The position numbers were made by a program, and so were the translations under genes. Positions 13,555 to 34,292 of a stretch of 64,000 bases of DNA are shown piece by piece. The DNA is taken from NCBI GenBank assembly GCA_943704425.1, contig CALSCP010000774.1, positions 105,208 to 169,207 of the forward strand. Direction: 5' to 3'. The stretch comes from Ministeria vibrans ATCC 50519. Taxonomy: Eukaryota; Protista; Filasterea. The notes beneath the pieces were generated by a model. That model worked only from the letters and a program-made list of their open reading frames with translations. It did no database searches and was not told where the DNA came from. Numbering within the stretch: the stretch's first letter is position 1; each line of letters opens with the position of its first letter.

Positions 13555-16500
13555 CTAAGCTGGATTTTCGGCTTGCAGTTTTTGTATCTGGCGCGGCGAG
13601 TACTTGAGCTTCTTGGACGAGTCATCCTCAACAGTGACAGGTGCGTACCGAGAGTTCTCTTCATCACGCACAATATCCGGACCCTCACTGGTGATACTCG
13701 TGTGCGCGCGACCTGTTGGTACCGAGCCGTAACTGGAGTTTTGTAGCGAGACTGACACACCCGTATTGCGATAGAAAATGTTGTCGTGCTCCACCCCCTC
13801 GGCAGCCATAGGCGCATAGACGCCAGCTTCGCGTGAGAGAAACGCACCGTTCTCACTGTAGGCTATACTTTCATGTTGTGATCCAGTAGCGCTCGAGTAC
13901 GCACCACTCTCATGGTGCACTCCGGGTGTGCTTGAGTACGTCTGAGAACTCCGCTCGGTGTCTTCGGGCACCGTGTCATACAGCAAAGACTCTTCCGTTC
14001 GCGTGGCGCCGTTACGCGACGGCGGTAGTCGCGGAGGCGCACCAAAGTCCGACTCGATGCGCGCAAGCGCAACAGGCGGTGGAGACGAGTCGTTGGCGGG
14101 CACGTAGGCAGTCGAGTCAAGCGTGGAAAAGCTCGCAGTGGACGCTACGCCATTGTCACCAGACACATAGGCATTAGACTCAGCTGTCGCCGACAGGTCA
14201 GATGATGGTAGGCCAGTATAGGCGCCACTCTCGACGCCCAGGCGGATCTCCCCGGTGCCCTCGTAGCCAGCGTTAGCAACGTCAAATGGCCTGGGTGCGT
14301 CTTCGTACGCATTCGAGATGCGACCGCGCTCCATCATCTCAAAGGTACCCGGGTCTTCCAGCAGCGTGGACGAGCTCGCACCAAGCAGTTGTTTCATCGC
14401 GTCCTTGGAAAGCGAACCACTCGACGACAAACTTGCAACGTGATACTGCTTTGAACGGCTCTCCAGACGTACCTGTCGACGACGACGCACCACAAGGAAG
14501 AGGAGAACGAGAAGTAACACAATGCAGAGGGCAGCAATGACAACAATGAGCATAGGCGACGACTCGTCGGCAGGCACATCCGAACCGCCGACAACGTTGA
14601 AGTCGTCGCAATGGGTGCCGTAGTAGGGAGACACGCAGACGCACACGTACGAGTTGGTTCCGTCTCGACAGGTGCCACCGTTCAGGCAAGGGCTACTTGC
14701 GCACTCGTTAACGTTGGTTTCGCATTGCGCGCCCACGTGGCTTGTCGGACAGGCACAAGCAAAGTCACCGCCGGAGGTCGTCATGCACGATCCACGGTTG
14801 AGACACGGACTGCTGGCGCACGGTCCAGACGTGCTGTCGCCACAGGCAGGCCCCGTAAACTCCGCCGTGCAGTTGCAGGTGACGCTGCCCACGAAAGCTG
14901 TCGGCTCACACACACCGCCGTTTTGACACGGGTTCGTACTGCAGTTGCCCAGCACCGTTTCACAGCGACCTCCACTGAACAGCGAATCACACACACACTC
15001 GACAGCTCCCGTGTTGGCCACCGCCCGACATTGCGCAGAGGAGGAACACGGCGAAGGATTGCACGTCCCCACAATCAGCGAGCACTTTACGCCGGTCGCG
15101 CCGGTCGGGCAGGCACACGTATAGGTGCCAACACCCCCAAGACACACACCGCCATTGGCACACGGTGATGAAGCGCACAAGTCAATGACATCATCGCAAG
15201 TGGCTCCCGCAAAGCCAGTCGCACACGTGCACGAAACGGCACCGGACACCTCGGCGCACGTCCCACGATTGCTACACGGGCTACTAGAGCACACTCCCGT
15301 CGTCGACTGGCCACAGTCGGCGCCAGTGAAGCCCGCCGGACACACACACACCAGACCCCCCGCTACCCCCAAGTCCTGACAATTTCCACCATTCGCGCAC
15401 GCATTGGCCGCATCCGCCAAGGTACAGTTTTTCGCCACAATTTTGCTGCAGTCGGCTCCCGTAAAGCCCGCATCGCAGACACACCGCACCGTGGTACCCA
15501 TCGCGACGCACAAACCGGTGCTTGCACACGTATTGGAAACACAGTCACCGATATGCTCATTGCACAAGTCACCCGTATGGCCCGCAGGGCACGAGCATGT
15601 AAAGCCCGCTGTGCCGTCGACGCAGGTGCTACCCAGAGCACAAGGCGAGCTGGCACACTCGTCGACACGTTGCTCGCACAGTGCGCCTGCGTCCCCAGGT
15701 AAACAGCGACATTCGAAGCCGCCACCTGTAAGAAGGACACAGCTACCTTGAGCCTGGCAAGGGTTGCTCGCACACTCATCGGTGACAATGTGTGAGCAAG
15801 TGAGTCCAGTCGTGCCAGCGGGACACGTGCAATTGACGGTGTCTGCATTGAGCGGGACACACGTAGCGCCACTGTCGCACGGATCGGCGTCGCACGTGCC
15901 CGAGACCACATCGCATAGGGTGCCTGTCACGCCTTGGATACATTCGCAGGTGTACGTACCGCTGCTTGAGTCTTCGCGGCAGAACGACACTCCATCCTGA
16001 CACTGGTTGGTCGGCTGACACGAACCCACCAGAGTGGCACAGGTGGCACCCGTGAAACCCGATGGACAGATACAAGAAAAGGAGTTCGACGTCGGCTGTG
16101 TACATGTTCCGCCGTTCGCGCATGGCGTGGTTGCACACTCATCAATGTCACTCTCACAGACGCGACCAGTGAAGCCCAGTGGACAAGCGCACAGGTAGGT
16201 CGATGAAGACAAGCTCGTGCACGATCCACGATTAAGACATGGCGCGGAAGCACAGCCGCCCGACGTTGTGTCCTCGCATGAGGGACCGGTGAATCCGGAA
16301 GGACACGCGCACTCCACCACATTTAGACCGACATCCAGGCAGGTTCCGCCATTGGCGCAAGGCGCAAGCGAGCCACATGAACCCACAACCTCGTCACAAA
16401 TAGCGCCAGTGAAACCCGGGTCGCAAACGCAAACAACACCGTTGGTGCTGGCGCGACATTCACCTCCGTTCGAACAAGGATCACTTCCAGGCGTGCAGTT

Positions 16501-31500: not shown

Positions 31501-34292
31501 TCACCGTCGCCGGCCGCAAAAAAGGTGTACCAACCTATGATAAAGAGTGTGTCAGAAAAATATTAAAACAATAATAATAATAATAATAATAATAATAATA
31601 ATAATAATAATAATAATAATAATAATAATAATAATAATTATAATAATAATAATAATAATAATAATAATAATAATAATAATATAAAAACTAACCTGACACA
31701 TTGTTGCTCAGAACATAGCCATCCCAAGAGACGGAGCGGTAGCTGTTAGACTGGACATGCCCTGAAGTGGGGGAGTTGTAGCCCCAGTCGATGATGGGGT
31801 CGACACGTTCGACGGCCAGTGCACTCAGCGAAAGATCGTTGAAGTAGCGAGCACGCAGACCACCCCATGCGGGTGTGGTGTCGCCCGGAAGAACTGAGGA
31901 GCATGCATCGACGGGCTGATCACAGTATGCACCAACCCAACCAGCTTCGCAGGTGCACACGTTGTCTTCTTCGCAGCAGCCGTGAACACACGGGGTGTCA
32001 CAAGAGACAACGCGCATAAGATTGTCGCTAGGAATGAGGCTGAAATCGGCGGCGGGCACGGCGACGGCACGCCACTCAAAGAACGCCTCGGCATACTGCG
32101 ACAAGTCACGGTACTCTATCTTGAGACGATAATCGACGTTGGCAGTGAGGTTGACGACGACACTGCTCGACTCAATGAGAGTGCCGTCGAGGAAGATTTT
32201 GCAGGTGAAGCCATCAAAGCGACAGCGGATATTGTACTCCGCGCTGATCCAGGGTCGCAGTAGACCAGCATATTCAATAGACCAATAGTTGGAGGGTAGC
32301 TCCTGAAGGAGGTCGCCGTAGGCGGCGTTCCATGAGACGTGGGGGACGGCGTGACGCGTGACGATACGGTCGAATTGAGAACCGTCGTAGTAGGTGGCGA
32401 TGAGGCCTGGCACGATGGCGCGAGACGCATTACACACGGTCAGGTGACAATTGGTGCCACTGTAGCCCGGATCACAGACGCAGCCATGGGCAGTGCATGA
32501 GCCATGGCCGCTGCAGGAGCCATCGCCATAGCACACAGCCGTTTGTGCGCACGCTGACGCGTGTGTCAAGCCAGCGTCGCAGGTGCAACGACCATTGTCA
32601 CACACGCCGCGCCCTGAACAGGTGTAGTAGGAGGATAGACTGGAGACGGAGGTTGCATTAATGACAACGTGGGAGGGCGCCGCCGAGTTGGTCGCGTTCA
32701 TGAGAGGGAAGCAATTGTCGTTGCCGGAGCACGAGTCGGTGCGGCAAACGACATTCTCGCAGGCGACGCCTTCGCGTTCGGGATCGCACAGACACACGCC
32801 ATTAGAGCACAAGCCGTACCCACTGCAGACGAATGCTGAGTCGTAGGAGATGCCCTGAGGACACGGACAGTTGGCACCAAATGTGTAATAATGCGAGTAG
32901 GCGGTTGCGGGTACCAGCACGTATGTTGTTTCACCGGGCTCGCGCCACTTGAGCGACCAAGAGACCGCACTGGTGGTCTCGTAGTACTTAGCGGCAATGG
33001 AGTAGGGGCGTGAGCCAACGAGAAACATGTCGCGGGTGCGACTGCTACTAACTGAGTCGAAGATGCGCACACCCGCGAGGTACAAGTCGATGTAGGAACT
33101 GGCAGCGACTTGTAGCGAGTACCAGCCGGTCGTGTTGACCGTGAGAAATCCCTCGGCGGCCCAACTAAAGAAGTCACTGGGACCGCCGGGATAGACTGCA
33201 CCGTAGGTGGTCGAGCGATAGAGCGTACTTTCGACACGCTGCAGGAGCAGGTTGGCAGGTGTCTGTTGCACCGTTGTCGAGAAGTAGCTGATGAGAATGC
33301 CGGCGCTGACGAGGGGCACCGAAGCGCTTGTGTTGGCGGAGACACACGTCGACGTGGAGATGTTACAGGTGGGACCGGTCCAGCCAACGTCGCAGTTACA
33401 AGCGTTCTGCCCTTCGCAACAGCCGTGGATGCAGCGCTCGCTACACGTCGTTGAGTGATAGAGAACGTCGAGTGGAATGGACTCGTCGACAGTGACATTG
33501 GGCGGGCGCCAGTTGACGTCAAAGGAGGCAGCGCCACTAAACTCGATAAATTCTGTCTTGAAGCGGTACAAGTGGCCCGCTGTAAGGTTTTGTTGGGCGT
33601 AGACGCGAGTATTGCCATAGTTGTAGCTGATGATTTGTGTGCCGTCAAGGTAGACGAACACTTGATCGTCGCCCGAGGCGCCAAAAGTGTACTCGCCGCT
33701 CCACGGTGCGTATAGGTAGCCTTCGATGACAAAGGCGAAGTAGTCGGGGCTTGTGATGAAGAGGGGCGGTGTCGAGTAGCCGAAGTTGAAGTCGACTTGT
33801 TGTGTTGTGTAAAAGCCCTTGACTTCCTGGAAATTTGAGTCGTCGTACACGGTGGTAAGGAGGCCCGGTCGAAGGGGTGCCGATTCGTGATTGCAAGAGA
33901 TTGCTATGTGGTGGGAGAGATAAGGGATTTTGTATAACAAAGGAGGTTGAGTGCGTCGTTGCGGCTCAGGCGGTGTGGATTGGGAGTATTTGGGTATGGG
34001 AGCGAAAGGAGAGCCTTGCGAGAGAGGGTGCTGGCCTTGACGGTGCCTGAGGATCGGGAGCGGGAAACAGGAAAGAGAATTGGGGGGTTGTGGGTTTTCG
34101 CTGGATGGGACGGGACGGGAAAGTGAGCTTACGCGAGACGCAATAGACACCCCAGGTGTTGTCAGGGCATGCACACGTGCCGTTGACAACAACGCCACCG
34201 TTGCTGCAGGCGGGTGGGTCGCTGGCGAGTGCTACCAAGAACAACCCAGCCAAAAGCGGAAAAGTCCGTAGAAGCAGACGATACGCGAGCAT
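13555..34292 (-). CDS. Giant (~6,600 aa) type I membrane protein: signal peptide, 10x PA14 interleaved with EGF-like repeats, Dictyostelium-type Cys repeats, Ig/carboxypeptidase-regulatory-like beta modules, ~50 Notch/fibropellin-type EGF repeats, TM helix, Tyr-rich tail
   Basis: Seven exons joined by phase-consistent GT-AG introns (approx. 34292-34133, 33903-31693, 31534-30850, 30793-30472, 30370-28857, 28744-22296, 22091-13555). Signal peptide MLAYRLLLRTFPLLAGLFLVALA; TM MLIVVIAALCIVLLLVLLFLVV-RRRR at ~14490-14553. The frame change at the N-gap 16997-17093 is attributed to the gap-size estimate. Confidence 0.88.
17095..19352. repeat. Near-perfect intragenic duplication of EGF-repeat-coding DNA (~1 kb block, offset 1260 bp)
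   Basis: 17095-18092 matches 18355-19352 almost base for base. 16901-16996 and 18251-18330 are further partial copies. The N-gap 16997-17093 sits inside the repeat. Confidence 0.95.
31570..31685. repeat. (AAT)n intronic microsatellite
   Basis: More than 30 AAT units inside an intron of the giant gene. Similar AAT/TTA tracts occur at ~12750-12850, 28755-28800, 50235-50298, 52805-52835 and 58050-58092. Confidence 0.95.

Follow-up and report, generated by a model that had tools for sequence, protein, structure and literature searches.

Protists commonly have giant mosaic surface proteins. In fungal Flo/Epa PA14 lectins, an Asp-Asp (DD) pair provides Ca-dependent sugar binding, and PA14 domains without this pair can still bind ligands. 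Dictyostelium reportedly has extracellular factors (Psi-type) that join PA14 to Cys-rich parts. Long arrays of EGF repeats are found in proteins of the Notch/Crumbs/fibropellin type, and PA14 domains occur in bacterial anti-sigma factors of the RsgI3 type. Here we analyzed a gene that shares parts with all of these systems, located in a 64,000-nucleotide stretch of DNA from the filasterean Ministeria vibrans ATCC 50519 (assembly GCA_943704425.1, contig CALSCP010000774.1, positions 105,208–169,207 of the forward strand); this whole stretch is called the window, and all positions below refer to it. The gene (34292–13555, minus strand, as are all features described within it) was confirmed as one real, intron-poor eukaryotic gene for a giant surface protein. 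Its product would be a type I membrane glycoprotein of giant size, with at least 6,592 amino acids (aa), and most likely a long-reach adhesion or recognition receptor, an assignment that we hold at slightly better than even confidence.

From the tip to the membrane, the parts of the protein are ten PA14 domains with Cys knots, Dicty_CTDC repeats, a supermodule of ~1,500 aa, at least 51 EGF repeats, a transmembrane helix and a tail. As in the Dictyostelium Psi-type factors, PA14 stands alongside Dicty_CTDC-type Cys repeats in an extracellular protein; those factors, however, are small and secreted and contain one PA14, whereas the window protein has ten, together with the supermodule, 51 EGFs, the transmembrane helix and the tail. 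Proteins of the Notch/Crumbs/fibropellin type resemble it in their long hEGF/cbEGF array, their O-glucose and O-fucose sites and their type I topology, but the window protein contains no LNR/NRR, ankyrin, laminin-G or DSL domain detectable with Pfam, and its tail is unrelated. RsgI3-type anti-sigma factors likewise carry PA14 as the extracellular domain of a single-pass membrane protein; in contrast to the protein studied here, they are bacterial, small and dedicated to sigma/anti-sigma signalling. A reading of the sequence made without database searches (the sequence-only reading) had found no known protein to match this architecture. That view holds for the combination of parts, which was absent from the retrieved proteins and appears to be unique as far as searched, but not for the ~1,500-aa core, which is colinear with a large bacterial and invertebrate family. 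No description of this architecture or of the supermodule was found in the literature.

Gene model and continuity of the reading frame

The gene model comprises seven GT-AG exons with matching phases (34292–34133, 33903–31693, 31534–30850, 30793–30472, 30369–28857, 28744–22296 and 22091–13558), followed by the stop codon (13555–13557); the last exon holds an assembly gap. Lengths were obtained by adding exon lengths, and similarity searches of the spliced model were made exon by exon. The coding total, with the gap left out, was 19,777 nucleotides (nt), or 6,592 codons, and exons 1–6 together amounted to 11,340 nt (3 × 3,780). All six introns begin with GT and end with AG, measure 59–229 nt and are AT-rich, compared with ~57% GC in the exons. 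Stop-free runs of 2,159 and 1,715 codons within the gene rule out a chance origin; the longer open reading frame (ORF) unites the PA14 domains, the Dicty repeats and the supermodule, and the shorter one unites the supermodule and the EGFs. The start codon and a signal peptide occupy the first 24 residues of exon 1 (34221–34292), where a basic N-region, a hydrophobic core and the sequence ALA/SD were recognized by eye in the translation.

Each splice is independently backed, since PA14 halves are completed, a Cys pattern is restored and a bacterial homologue is colinear across the last junction. Intron 2 splits PA14 no. 4 into complementary halves (positions 4–67 and 84–154 of the hidden Markov model, HMM), and intron 4 does the same to PA14 no. 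5 (positions 8–128 and 128–153); splicing of introns 1 and 5 re-forms the recurring EGF-like Cys pattern. Intron 6 (22092–22295, phase 0, with the ends GTAATC...TTATTAG) lies within the supermodule, and a bacterial homologue (P0001) runs unbroken across the corresponding point (residues 924/925). The sequence-only reading had proposed one spliceable gene for a giant receptor or adhesin of ~6,600 aa with a signal peptide, a transmembrane helix and the listed domains. The seven exons, with fitting phases and 6,592 codons, bear this out, and the product is of type I. Intron 2 consists almost entirely of an (AAT)41 microsatellite (31559–31681), and introns 5 and 6 contain ATT/TAA runs (28760–28800 and 22200–22290, respectively).

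The assembly gap, a run of 97 N at 16997–17093, lies inside one EGF unit. Taken literally, the 97 N amount to a one-base frame shift, which yields two listed ORFs (16938–22085 and 13555–17169). Comparison of the 112 nt before the gap with the 112 nt after it revealed 111 identical positions in the same codon register, and the EGF unit encoded by the two flanks is the same apart from a single Gly/Val exchange. The gap adjoins a young tandem duplication (17094–19352), in which 17094–18092 and 18354–19352 are ~99.5% identical over 1 kb, with a period of 1,260 bp and ~11 EGF units per period. Because the near-identical flanks share one register and lie next to this tandem duplicate, the reading frame is likely continuous through the gap; the contig ends may overlap, or whole repeat units may be absent, and an open frame would be the simplest outcome in either case. 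The 1-kb duplicate either arose very recently or reflects copies that are collapsed or unresolved, and since it adjoins the gap, the EGF count should be read as a lower limit or as approximate. Outside the gene, four more short runs of N were located (2692–2701, 10624–10631, 35060–35066 and 39385–39388), the third of them just upstream of the gene start.

PA14 domains, cysteine repeats, EGF array and tail

The PA14 domains, separated by EGF-like Cys knots of the teneurin/tenascin type, extend over 26835–33903 (exons 2–6, introns 2–5). Pfam PA14 (PF07691) matched with scores of 98, 37.9 and 115.5 bits (cut-off 24), a self-built HMM delimited exactly ten copies, two of them split by introns, and the spacers matched EGF_TEN, EGF_2 and DUF7949 in Pfam; the ten domains with EGF-like spacers named in the sequence-only reading were therefore recovered by both means. 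At the position aligned to the DD/DN of solved PA14 domains, the DD pair was kept in two of the ten, copy 1 (GDD) and copy 5 (ADD). Ten equivalent lectin sites are thus unsupported, and the suggested multivalent glycan sensor becomes weaker than claimed; glycan binding by some of the copies is plausible. The likeness to fungal Flo/Epa adhesins gave way to a different one: the solved domains closest to copy 1 were domain 1 of anthrax protective antigen and the clostridial tandem PA14 (6qdi, and 6qe7 from the RsgI3 anti-sigma factor), and the matches of copy 1 to PDB 6qe7 and 6qdi (E 1e-9 to 2e-14) express likeness at the level of the domain only.

The Dicty_CTDC-type Cys repeats follow at 25797–26705 with a period of ~25 aa. 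Dicty_CTDC (Pfam PF00526) scored 42.6 bits against a cut-off of 27, in the same ORF as PF07691, and a regular expression counted 12 units from 26705 to 25797; the earlier estimate of ~20 short CDDxNxCTxDxC repeats was too high. The closest database relatives of this array were Myxococcota-type proteins (42–44% identity). The best 120 matches of the PA14 and Dicty part were bacterial or metagenomic (Myxococcota-type) and none was named Dictyostelium; this search covered subjects of 1,187–3,778 aa, a range outside which the small Psi proteins fall. For the Dictyostelium Psi-type factors, see Kolbinger et al. 2005 (reference 37 of PMC6889452). Of the proposed Psi-type architecture, the presence of PA14 with Dicty_CTDC in one extracellular protein stands, but the resemblance amounts to co-occurrence, with bacterial proteins as the best matches.

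The EGF array, as assembled, contains 51 repeats (14608–20807), 31 before the gap and 20 after it. Pfam EGF scored 587 and 325 bits, and hEGF and EGF_CA also matched. Judged by the Cys pattern, the Ca-binding N-terminal consensus was found in 21 of the 51 repeats, the O-glucose consensus (C1-x-S-x-[PA]-C2) in 38 and the O-fucose consensus (C2-x(4-5)-[ST]-C3) in 39; an array of ~50 Notch/Crumbs-like repeats had been anticipated from the sequence, and rightly so. A single transmembrane helix of 22 residues (14488–14553), the best hydrophobic window of the post-gap ORF, is followed by RRRR and by a Ser-rich cytoplasmic tail of 306 aa (13558–14487; ~310 with RRRR), in agreement with the ~310-aa tail expected. 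The tail contains 15 Tyr (4.9%), ~9 of which are in [ED]-x-x-A-Y contexts, as well as five YxxPhi motifs and no NPxY. The 314 C-terminal residues had no match in Pfam or NCBIfam and no kinase domain. A link to phosphotyrosine signalling, also part of the sequence-only reading, would depend on motifs, with no kinase, SH2 or NPxY in the tail.

The defining parts of several known families were looked for and not found. For Notch, the part after the supermodule matched EGF-type families only and the tail matched nothing in Pfam, which leaves no LNR/NRR and no RAM/ankyrin. For CED-1/Draper/MEGF10, an EMI domain, NPxY and a paired YxxL/I were all absent; the tail has one YTGL. For teneurins, the EGF_TEN and EGF_Teneurin matches overlap generic EGF matches, no YD/RHS match was obtained, and the topology is type I rather than type II. 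For alpha-2-macroglobulin, no A2M-family Pfam match was present in the window and no PDB match was found by sequence or fold; bMG3 gave a sub-threshold match in one homologue only. Since these parts are missing, the gene is assigned on sequence grounds to a place outside the Notch, CED-1/MEGF10, teneurin, RTK and alpha-2-macroglobulin families and inside the supermodule family.

The supermodule and its relatives

By alignment, the beta modules, Thr/Ser/Pro linker, cationic cassette and 400-aa module form one colinear supermodule of ~1,500 aa; the sequence-only reading had listed the linker, cassette and 400-aa module as separate items. It takes in residues 1010–2153 of exon 6 and 1–425 of exon 7, and from residue 1139 onward it aligned colinearly to residues 45–1330 of P0001 (E of 9e-57 in part 1, 5e-80 in part 3), as well as to over 100 further proteins. 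Ahead of the supermodule lies an Ig-like (He_PIG-like) domain (25335–25727), which has no Pfam match of its own and is 29–34% identical to repeated domains of ~80 aa found before the module in homologues from bacteria and Saccoglossus. Part 1 (23820–25457) is a beta-sandwich string of CARDB/NEW3/CarboxypepD_reg-like type with 26–31% identity to more than 100 homologues; its own CarboxypepD_reg match was weak (E 6e-5), and the homologues hold CARDB, NPCBM_assoc and CarboxypepD_reg in the same order. An insertion inside the supermodule follows (23520–23819), a linker rich in Thr, Ser, Pro and Ala in the translation, because of which the interval from the beta part to the Ig part measures 508 aa in the window versus a typical 375–410 aa in homologues.

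Part 2a (22950–23519) is the Cys-rich subdomain that had been called a cationic cassette. Its 190 aa contain 21 Arg, no Lys, 1 Asp, 2 Glu, 10 Trp, 18 Tyr and 11 Cys, giving a net charge of ~+18. An HMM derived from 80 homologues of bacteria, and thus not from the window itself, aligned through the cassette in the ORF frame only (E 1e-44), and the pattern C..CG..C..C.PC..C is shared by the cassette and the family HMM. The cassette is therefore real and homologous, and corresponds to the Cys-rich subdomain of the family; a frameshift or wrong frame at this place was rejected, as the ORF frame alone is open and alone matches the homologue HMM. Part 2b (22296–22949) is a helical bundle ending in a Cys-x8-Gln seam; its RWNR and DF motifs, like C400 and Q409, are nearly invariant across the family. 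The Cys and the Gln, nine residues apart, lie at 22296–22323 at the end of exon 6, and intron 6 begins directly after the Gln. Part 3 (20808–22091), the conserved 400-aa module, consists of three Ig-like beta-sandwich domains. Two enzymatic or covalent chemistries were considered and set aside: a zincin (HExxH) reading, since the family has IHELxH and the window HDLIH (21305–21319, residues 259–263 of 20808–22091) in a confidently predicted beta strand, and a thioester (CxEQ or TQxA-type) reading, since the conserved Gln follows the Cys at a distance of nine residues.

AlphaFold2 modelling of the last 428 aa with a 37-row alignment gave three all-beta sandwich domains with a predicted local distance difference test score (pLDDT) of 88, and a Foldseek search of the PDB with part 3 returned generic Ig-like strings only (AgI/II, integrin legs; TM-score at most 0.26). 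The helical bundle was modelled with a pLDDT of ~90 or more and the Cys-rich part with low confidence; the helical/Cys part had no PDB fold match by Foldseek (best E 0.67). Even at lax thresholds, Pfam and NCBIfam gave nothing useful for the supermodule and the tail, and the same was true of three bacterial homologues. PDB sequence searches with single queries and a profile left the supermodule unmatched and returned only downstream cadherin and SdrD-B-like matches.

When the last 452 aa were searched against the full library with HMMER, 2,534 representative clusters passed E ≤ 1e-3, of which 1,743 reached E ≤ 1e-30; most were bacterial (PVC, Cyanobacteria, Armatimonadota), and part 3 was 38–51% identical to the library matches. 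A scan of one genome per bacterial species yielded 445 loci, mostly in Verrucomicrobiota, Planctomycetota, Armatimonadota, Cyanobacteria and Desulfobacterota. In bacteria, the proteins that carry the module are giant exoproteins, which also contain RTX, Calx-beta, S8 peptidase, FN3, He_PIG or dockerin parts. Those of Microcystis, Nostoc and Calothrix, which bear the annotation 'S8 family serine peptidase' or 'cadherin domain-containing protein', match the window protein colinearly over ~1,500 aa, as do those of Verrucomicrobiota, Planctomycetota and Armatimonadota. They share all parts of this stretch with it, namely the He_PIG-like domain, the beta string, the Cys-rich/helical part with the Cys-x8-Gln seam and the three Ig-like domains. 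Unlike the window protein, they have no EGF arrays, no transmembrane helix with tail and no introns; in place of these they have RTX, Calx-beta, S8, FN3, dockerin or RHS parts. The window supermodule in turn differs from the bacterial ones in its 100-aa Thr/Ser/Pro insert and its Arg/Trp/Tyr-rich Cys-rich subdomain. Among 184 retrieved relatives of the module, none had an EGF array and only two had a PA14 domain. At the locus of the cyanobacterium Calothrix sp. NIES-4105 (1022–15421 and 16846–18879), the homologue is a protein of 4,799 aa that combines RTX, Calx-beta and the module with an S8 peptidase at its C terminus; it is followed by separate genes for an S8 peptidase and an AAA_21 ATPase.

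The top two matches were animal proteins, one from Saccoglossus (LOC100371179; 7,485 aa, with the module in three tandem copies) and one from Halocaridina (two copies). A 'protocadherin Fat 4-like' protein of Lingula, in which the module accompanies nine cadherin repeats, and Gigantopelta LOC121369238 fell in the same clade, which had a support of 100 (Shimodaira–Hasegawa-like approximate likelihood-ratio test, SH-aLRT; IQ-TREE, 70 rows), with the window copy adjacent on a long branch. A tree constrained to unite the window copy with the animal clade was 27 log-likelihood units better than the free quick-search tree (approximately unbiased test, p 0.88), so that the best tree joins the two. 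These invertebrate carriers (Saccoglossus kowalevskii XP_006822956.1, Lingula anatina XP_023932455.1, Gigantopelta aegis XP_041350126.1 and Halocaridina rubra KAK7084501.1) resemble the window protein in having the module beside adhesion-type repeats (cadherin, EGF-like), and differ from it in their two to three tandem copies (Saccoglossus, Halocaridina) or cadherin arrays, with no PA14 array found and an identity of 34–44%. In XP_006822956.1, residues ~2270–7040 form the three tandem supermodules, two of which are 85% identical in the Ig part, suggesting a recent internal duplication.

The tree weakly favours a single eukaryotic origin of the module. The module may have come down within a eukaryotic lineage to which animals belong, or it may have been taken up from bacteria long ago. 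A recent transfer, like contamination, is excluded by the uniform GC content at third codon positions (GC3), at 0.58–0.66 along the gene (exon 2 left out) and 0.64–0.71 in neighbouring genes, together with the intron inside the module.

Candidate function, genomic setting and significance

In the proposed mechanism, the Dicty_CTDC repeats would act as a rigid stalk beneath the PA14 array, and the distal PA14 domains (at least copies 1 and 5) and the supermodule would bind ligands; candidates are glycans or polymers on the surface of prey, of the substrate or of adjacent cells. The EGF rod may set reach and stiffness, and the tail, described as disordered, may couple binding to the cell interior by tyrosine phosphorylation or AP-2-type endocytic sorting. 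The matches to PA14, EGF, Dicty_CTDC and CarboxypepD_reg, together with the signal peptide and the transmembrane helix, point to an adhesion-type make-up, as do the partner domains of the module in other proteins, which are of adhesion or exoprotein type (RTX, Calx-beta, S8, FN3, He_PIG; cadherins in Lingula). The tandem PA14 of the clostridial anti-sigma factor RsgI3, among the closest solved relatives, is consistent with a sensor role of PA14. Several observations weigh against this proposal. Eight of the ten PA14 copies have no DD pair, so that lectin activity may be limited or absent, and the window module sits on a branch of length 1.2, such that its grouping with animals may reflect long-branch attraction. 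Moreover, the tail has no recognizable domain and a Tyr content that is only modestly raised, and the central domain of the supermodule has no structural relative, with its Cys-rich part poorly modelled.

An alternative is a protein that engages in homophilic or heterophilic cell-cell or cell-matrix adhesion or in self-recognition through its supermodule or its EGF rod, in the manner of Fat or Crumbs, with the PA14 domains mostly as spacers and with a tail for endocytic turnover (YxxPhi) rather than signalling. The animal relatives of the supermodule are found in cadherin- and EGF-bearing proteins, the DD pair is missing from most PA14 copies, the tail has its five YxxPhi, and the young EGF duplication suggests length variation as in recognition molecules; ten distal PA14 domains, however, would be a costly spacer, and those without the DD pair may still bind; on balance, we consider this alternative unlikely. 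A phagocytic receptor for prey capture similar to CED-1/Draper/MEGF10, whose EGF-rich ectodomain binds particles and whose tail tyrosines recruit the engulfment machinery, would share the EGF-rich type I topology and the many tail Tyr motifs with upstream acidic residues, and its PA14 and bacterial-type modules could bind microbial surfaces. We consider it improbable here, given that no EMI domain, NPxY or ITAM-like paired YxxL/I is present and that the EGFs are of the Notch-type hEGF/cbEGF rather than the atypical MEGF kind.

Two further alternatives concern the integrity of the gene. The scaffold might have joined two genes, the first for a secreted protein of PA14, supermodule and EGF parts that stops within the gap, the second for a distinct receptor after it with EGFs, transmembrane helix and tail; the N run does disrupt the nominal frame, and it sits in a repeat, where scaffolders can err. 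Its flanks nevertheless represent one EGF unit on one strand and in one codon register, no stop codon and no AT-rich intergenic or intron-like sequence occurs near the gap, and the piece after it opens in the middle of an EGF unit with no start codon or signal peptide, all of which makes two genes very improbable. Still less credible, to the point of being nearly negligible, is an assembly chimera or bacterial contamination in which a bacterial-like core was misassembled into a eukaryotic gene. The 38–51% identity of the core to bacterial proteins and the proximity of the Dicty_CTDC array to Myxococcota-type proteins would fit such an event; the single ORFs of 2,159 and 1,715 codons, however, span the PA14-Dicty-module and module-EGF junctions, neither of which holds an N run, a spliceosomal-type intron lies within the module, GC3 is uniform, and eukaryotic genes are located on both sides. 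The long-reach adhesion or recognition receptor, encoded by one continuous gene, remains the reading that we prefer.

The flanking genes are Sec6, EML5/6-like, ZIP and ABC-type. The EML5/6-like gene is a single ORF of 1,378 codons (59005–63141, plus strand) with HELP motifs and tandem beta-propellers, whose best matches had 36–47% identity (animals, EukProt protists, a nucleariid and an amoebozoan). A 744-codon ORF (46680–48914, plus strand) gave a borderline match to the fungal-type Zn(2)-Cys(6) binuclear cluster (21.4 bits; cut-off 21), which, if genuine, would hint at the lineage. Exact-match searches with two neighbouring ORFs, this one among them, returned no record, and JGI metagenomes yielded no close relative. 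No tRNA or Rfam match was obtained in the 64-kb window.

The gene is ordinary in kind, a giant mosaic surface protein, and new in the combination of its parts. As a widespread module of ~1,500 aa without Pfam, NCBIfam or PDB coverage, which also occurs in hemichordate, brachiopod, mollusc and crustacean proteins, the supermodule is a good target for work on structure and function. Tentatively, and with considerable doubt, it may represent an undescribed ancient extracellular family of bacteria and a eukaryotic lineage including animals, with a central Cys-rich/helical fold for which there is no solved relative, here wired to a Notch-type glycosylatable EGF rod and a multi-tyrosine tail, in which case the protein would be an early non-animal coupling of adhesion to phosphotyrosine-type signalling. 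An intron-bearing module that groups weakly with the animal copies bears on the question of old transfer or shared descent between bacteria and the relatives of animals. Notch-type O-glucose and O-fucose sites in a non-animal-like genomic setting make it testable whether this glycosylation system predates animals.

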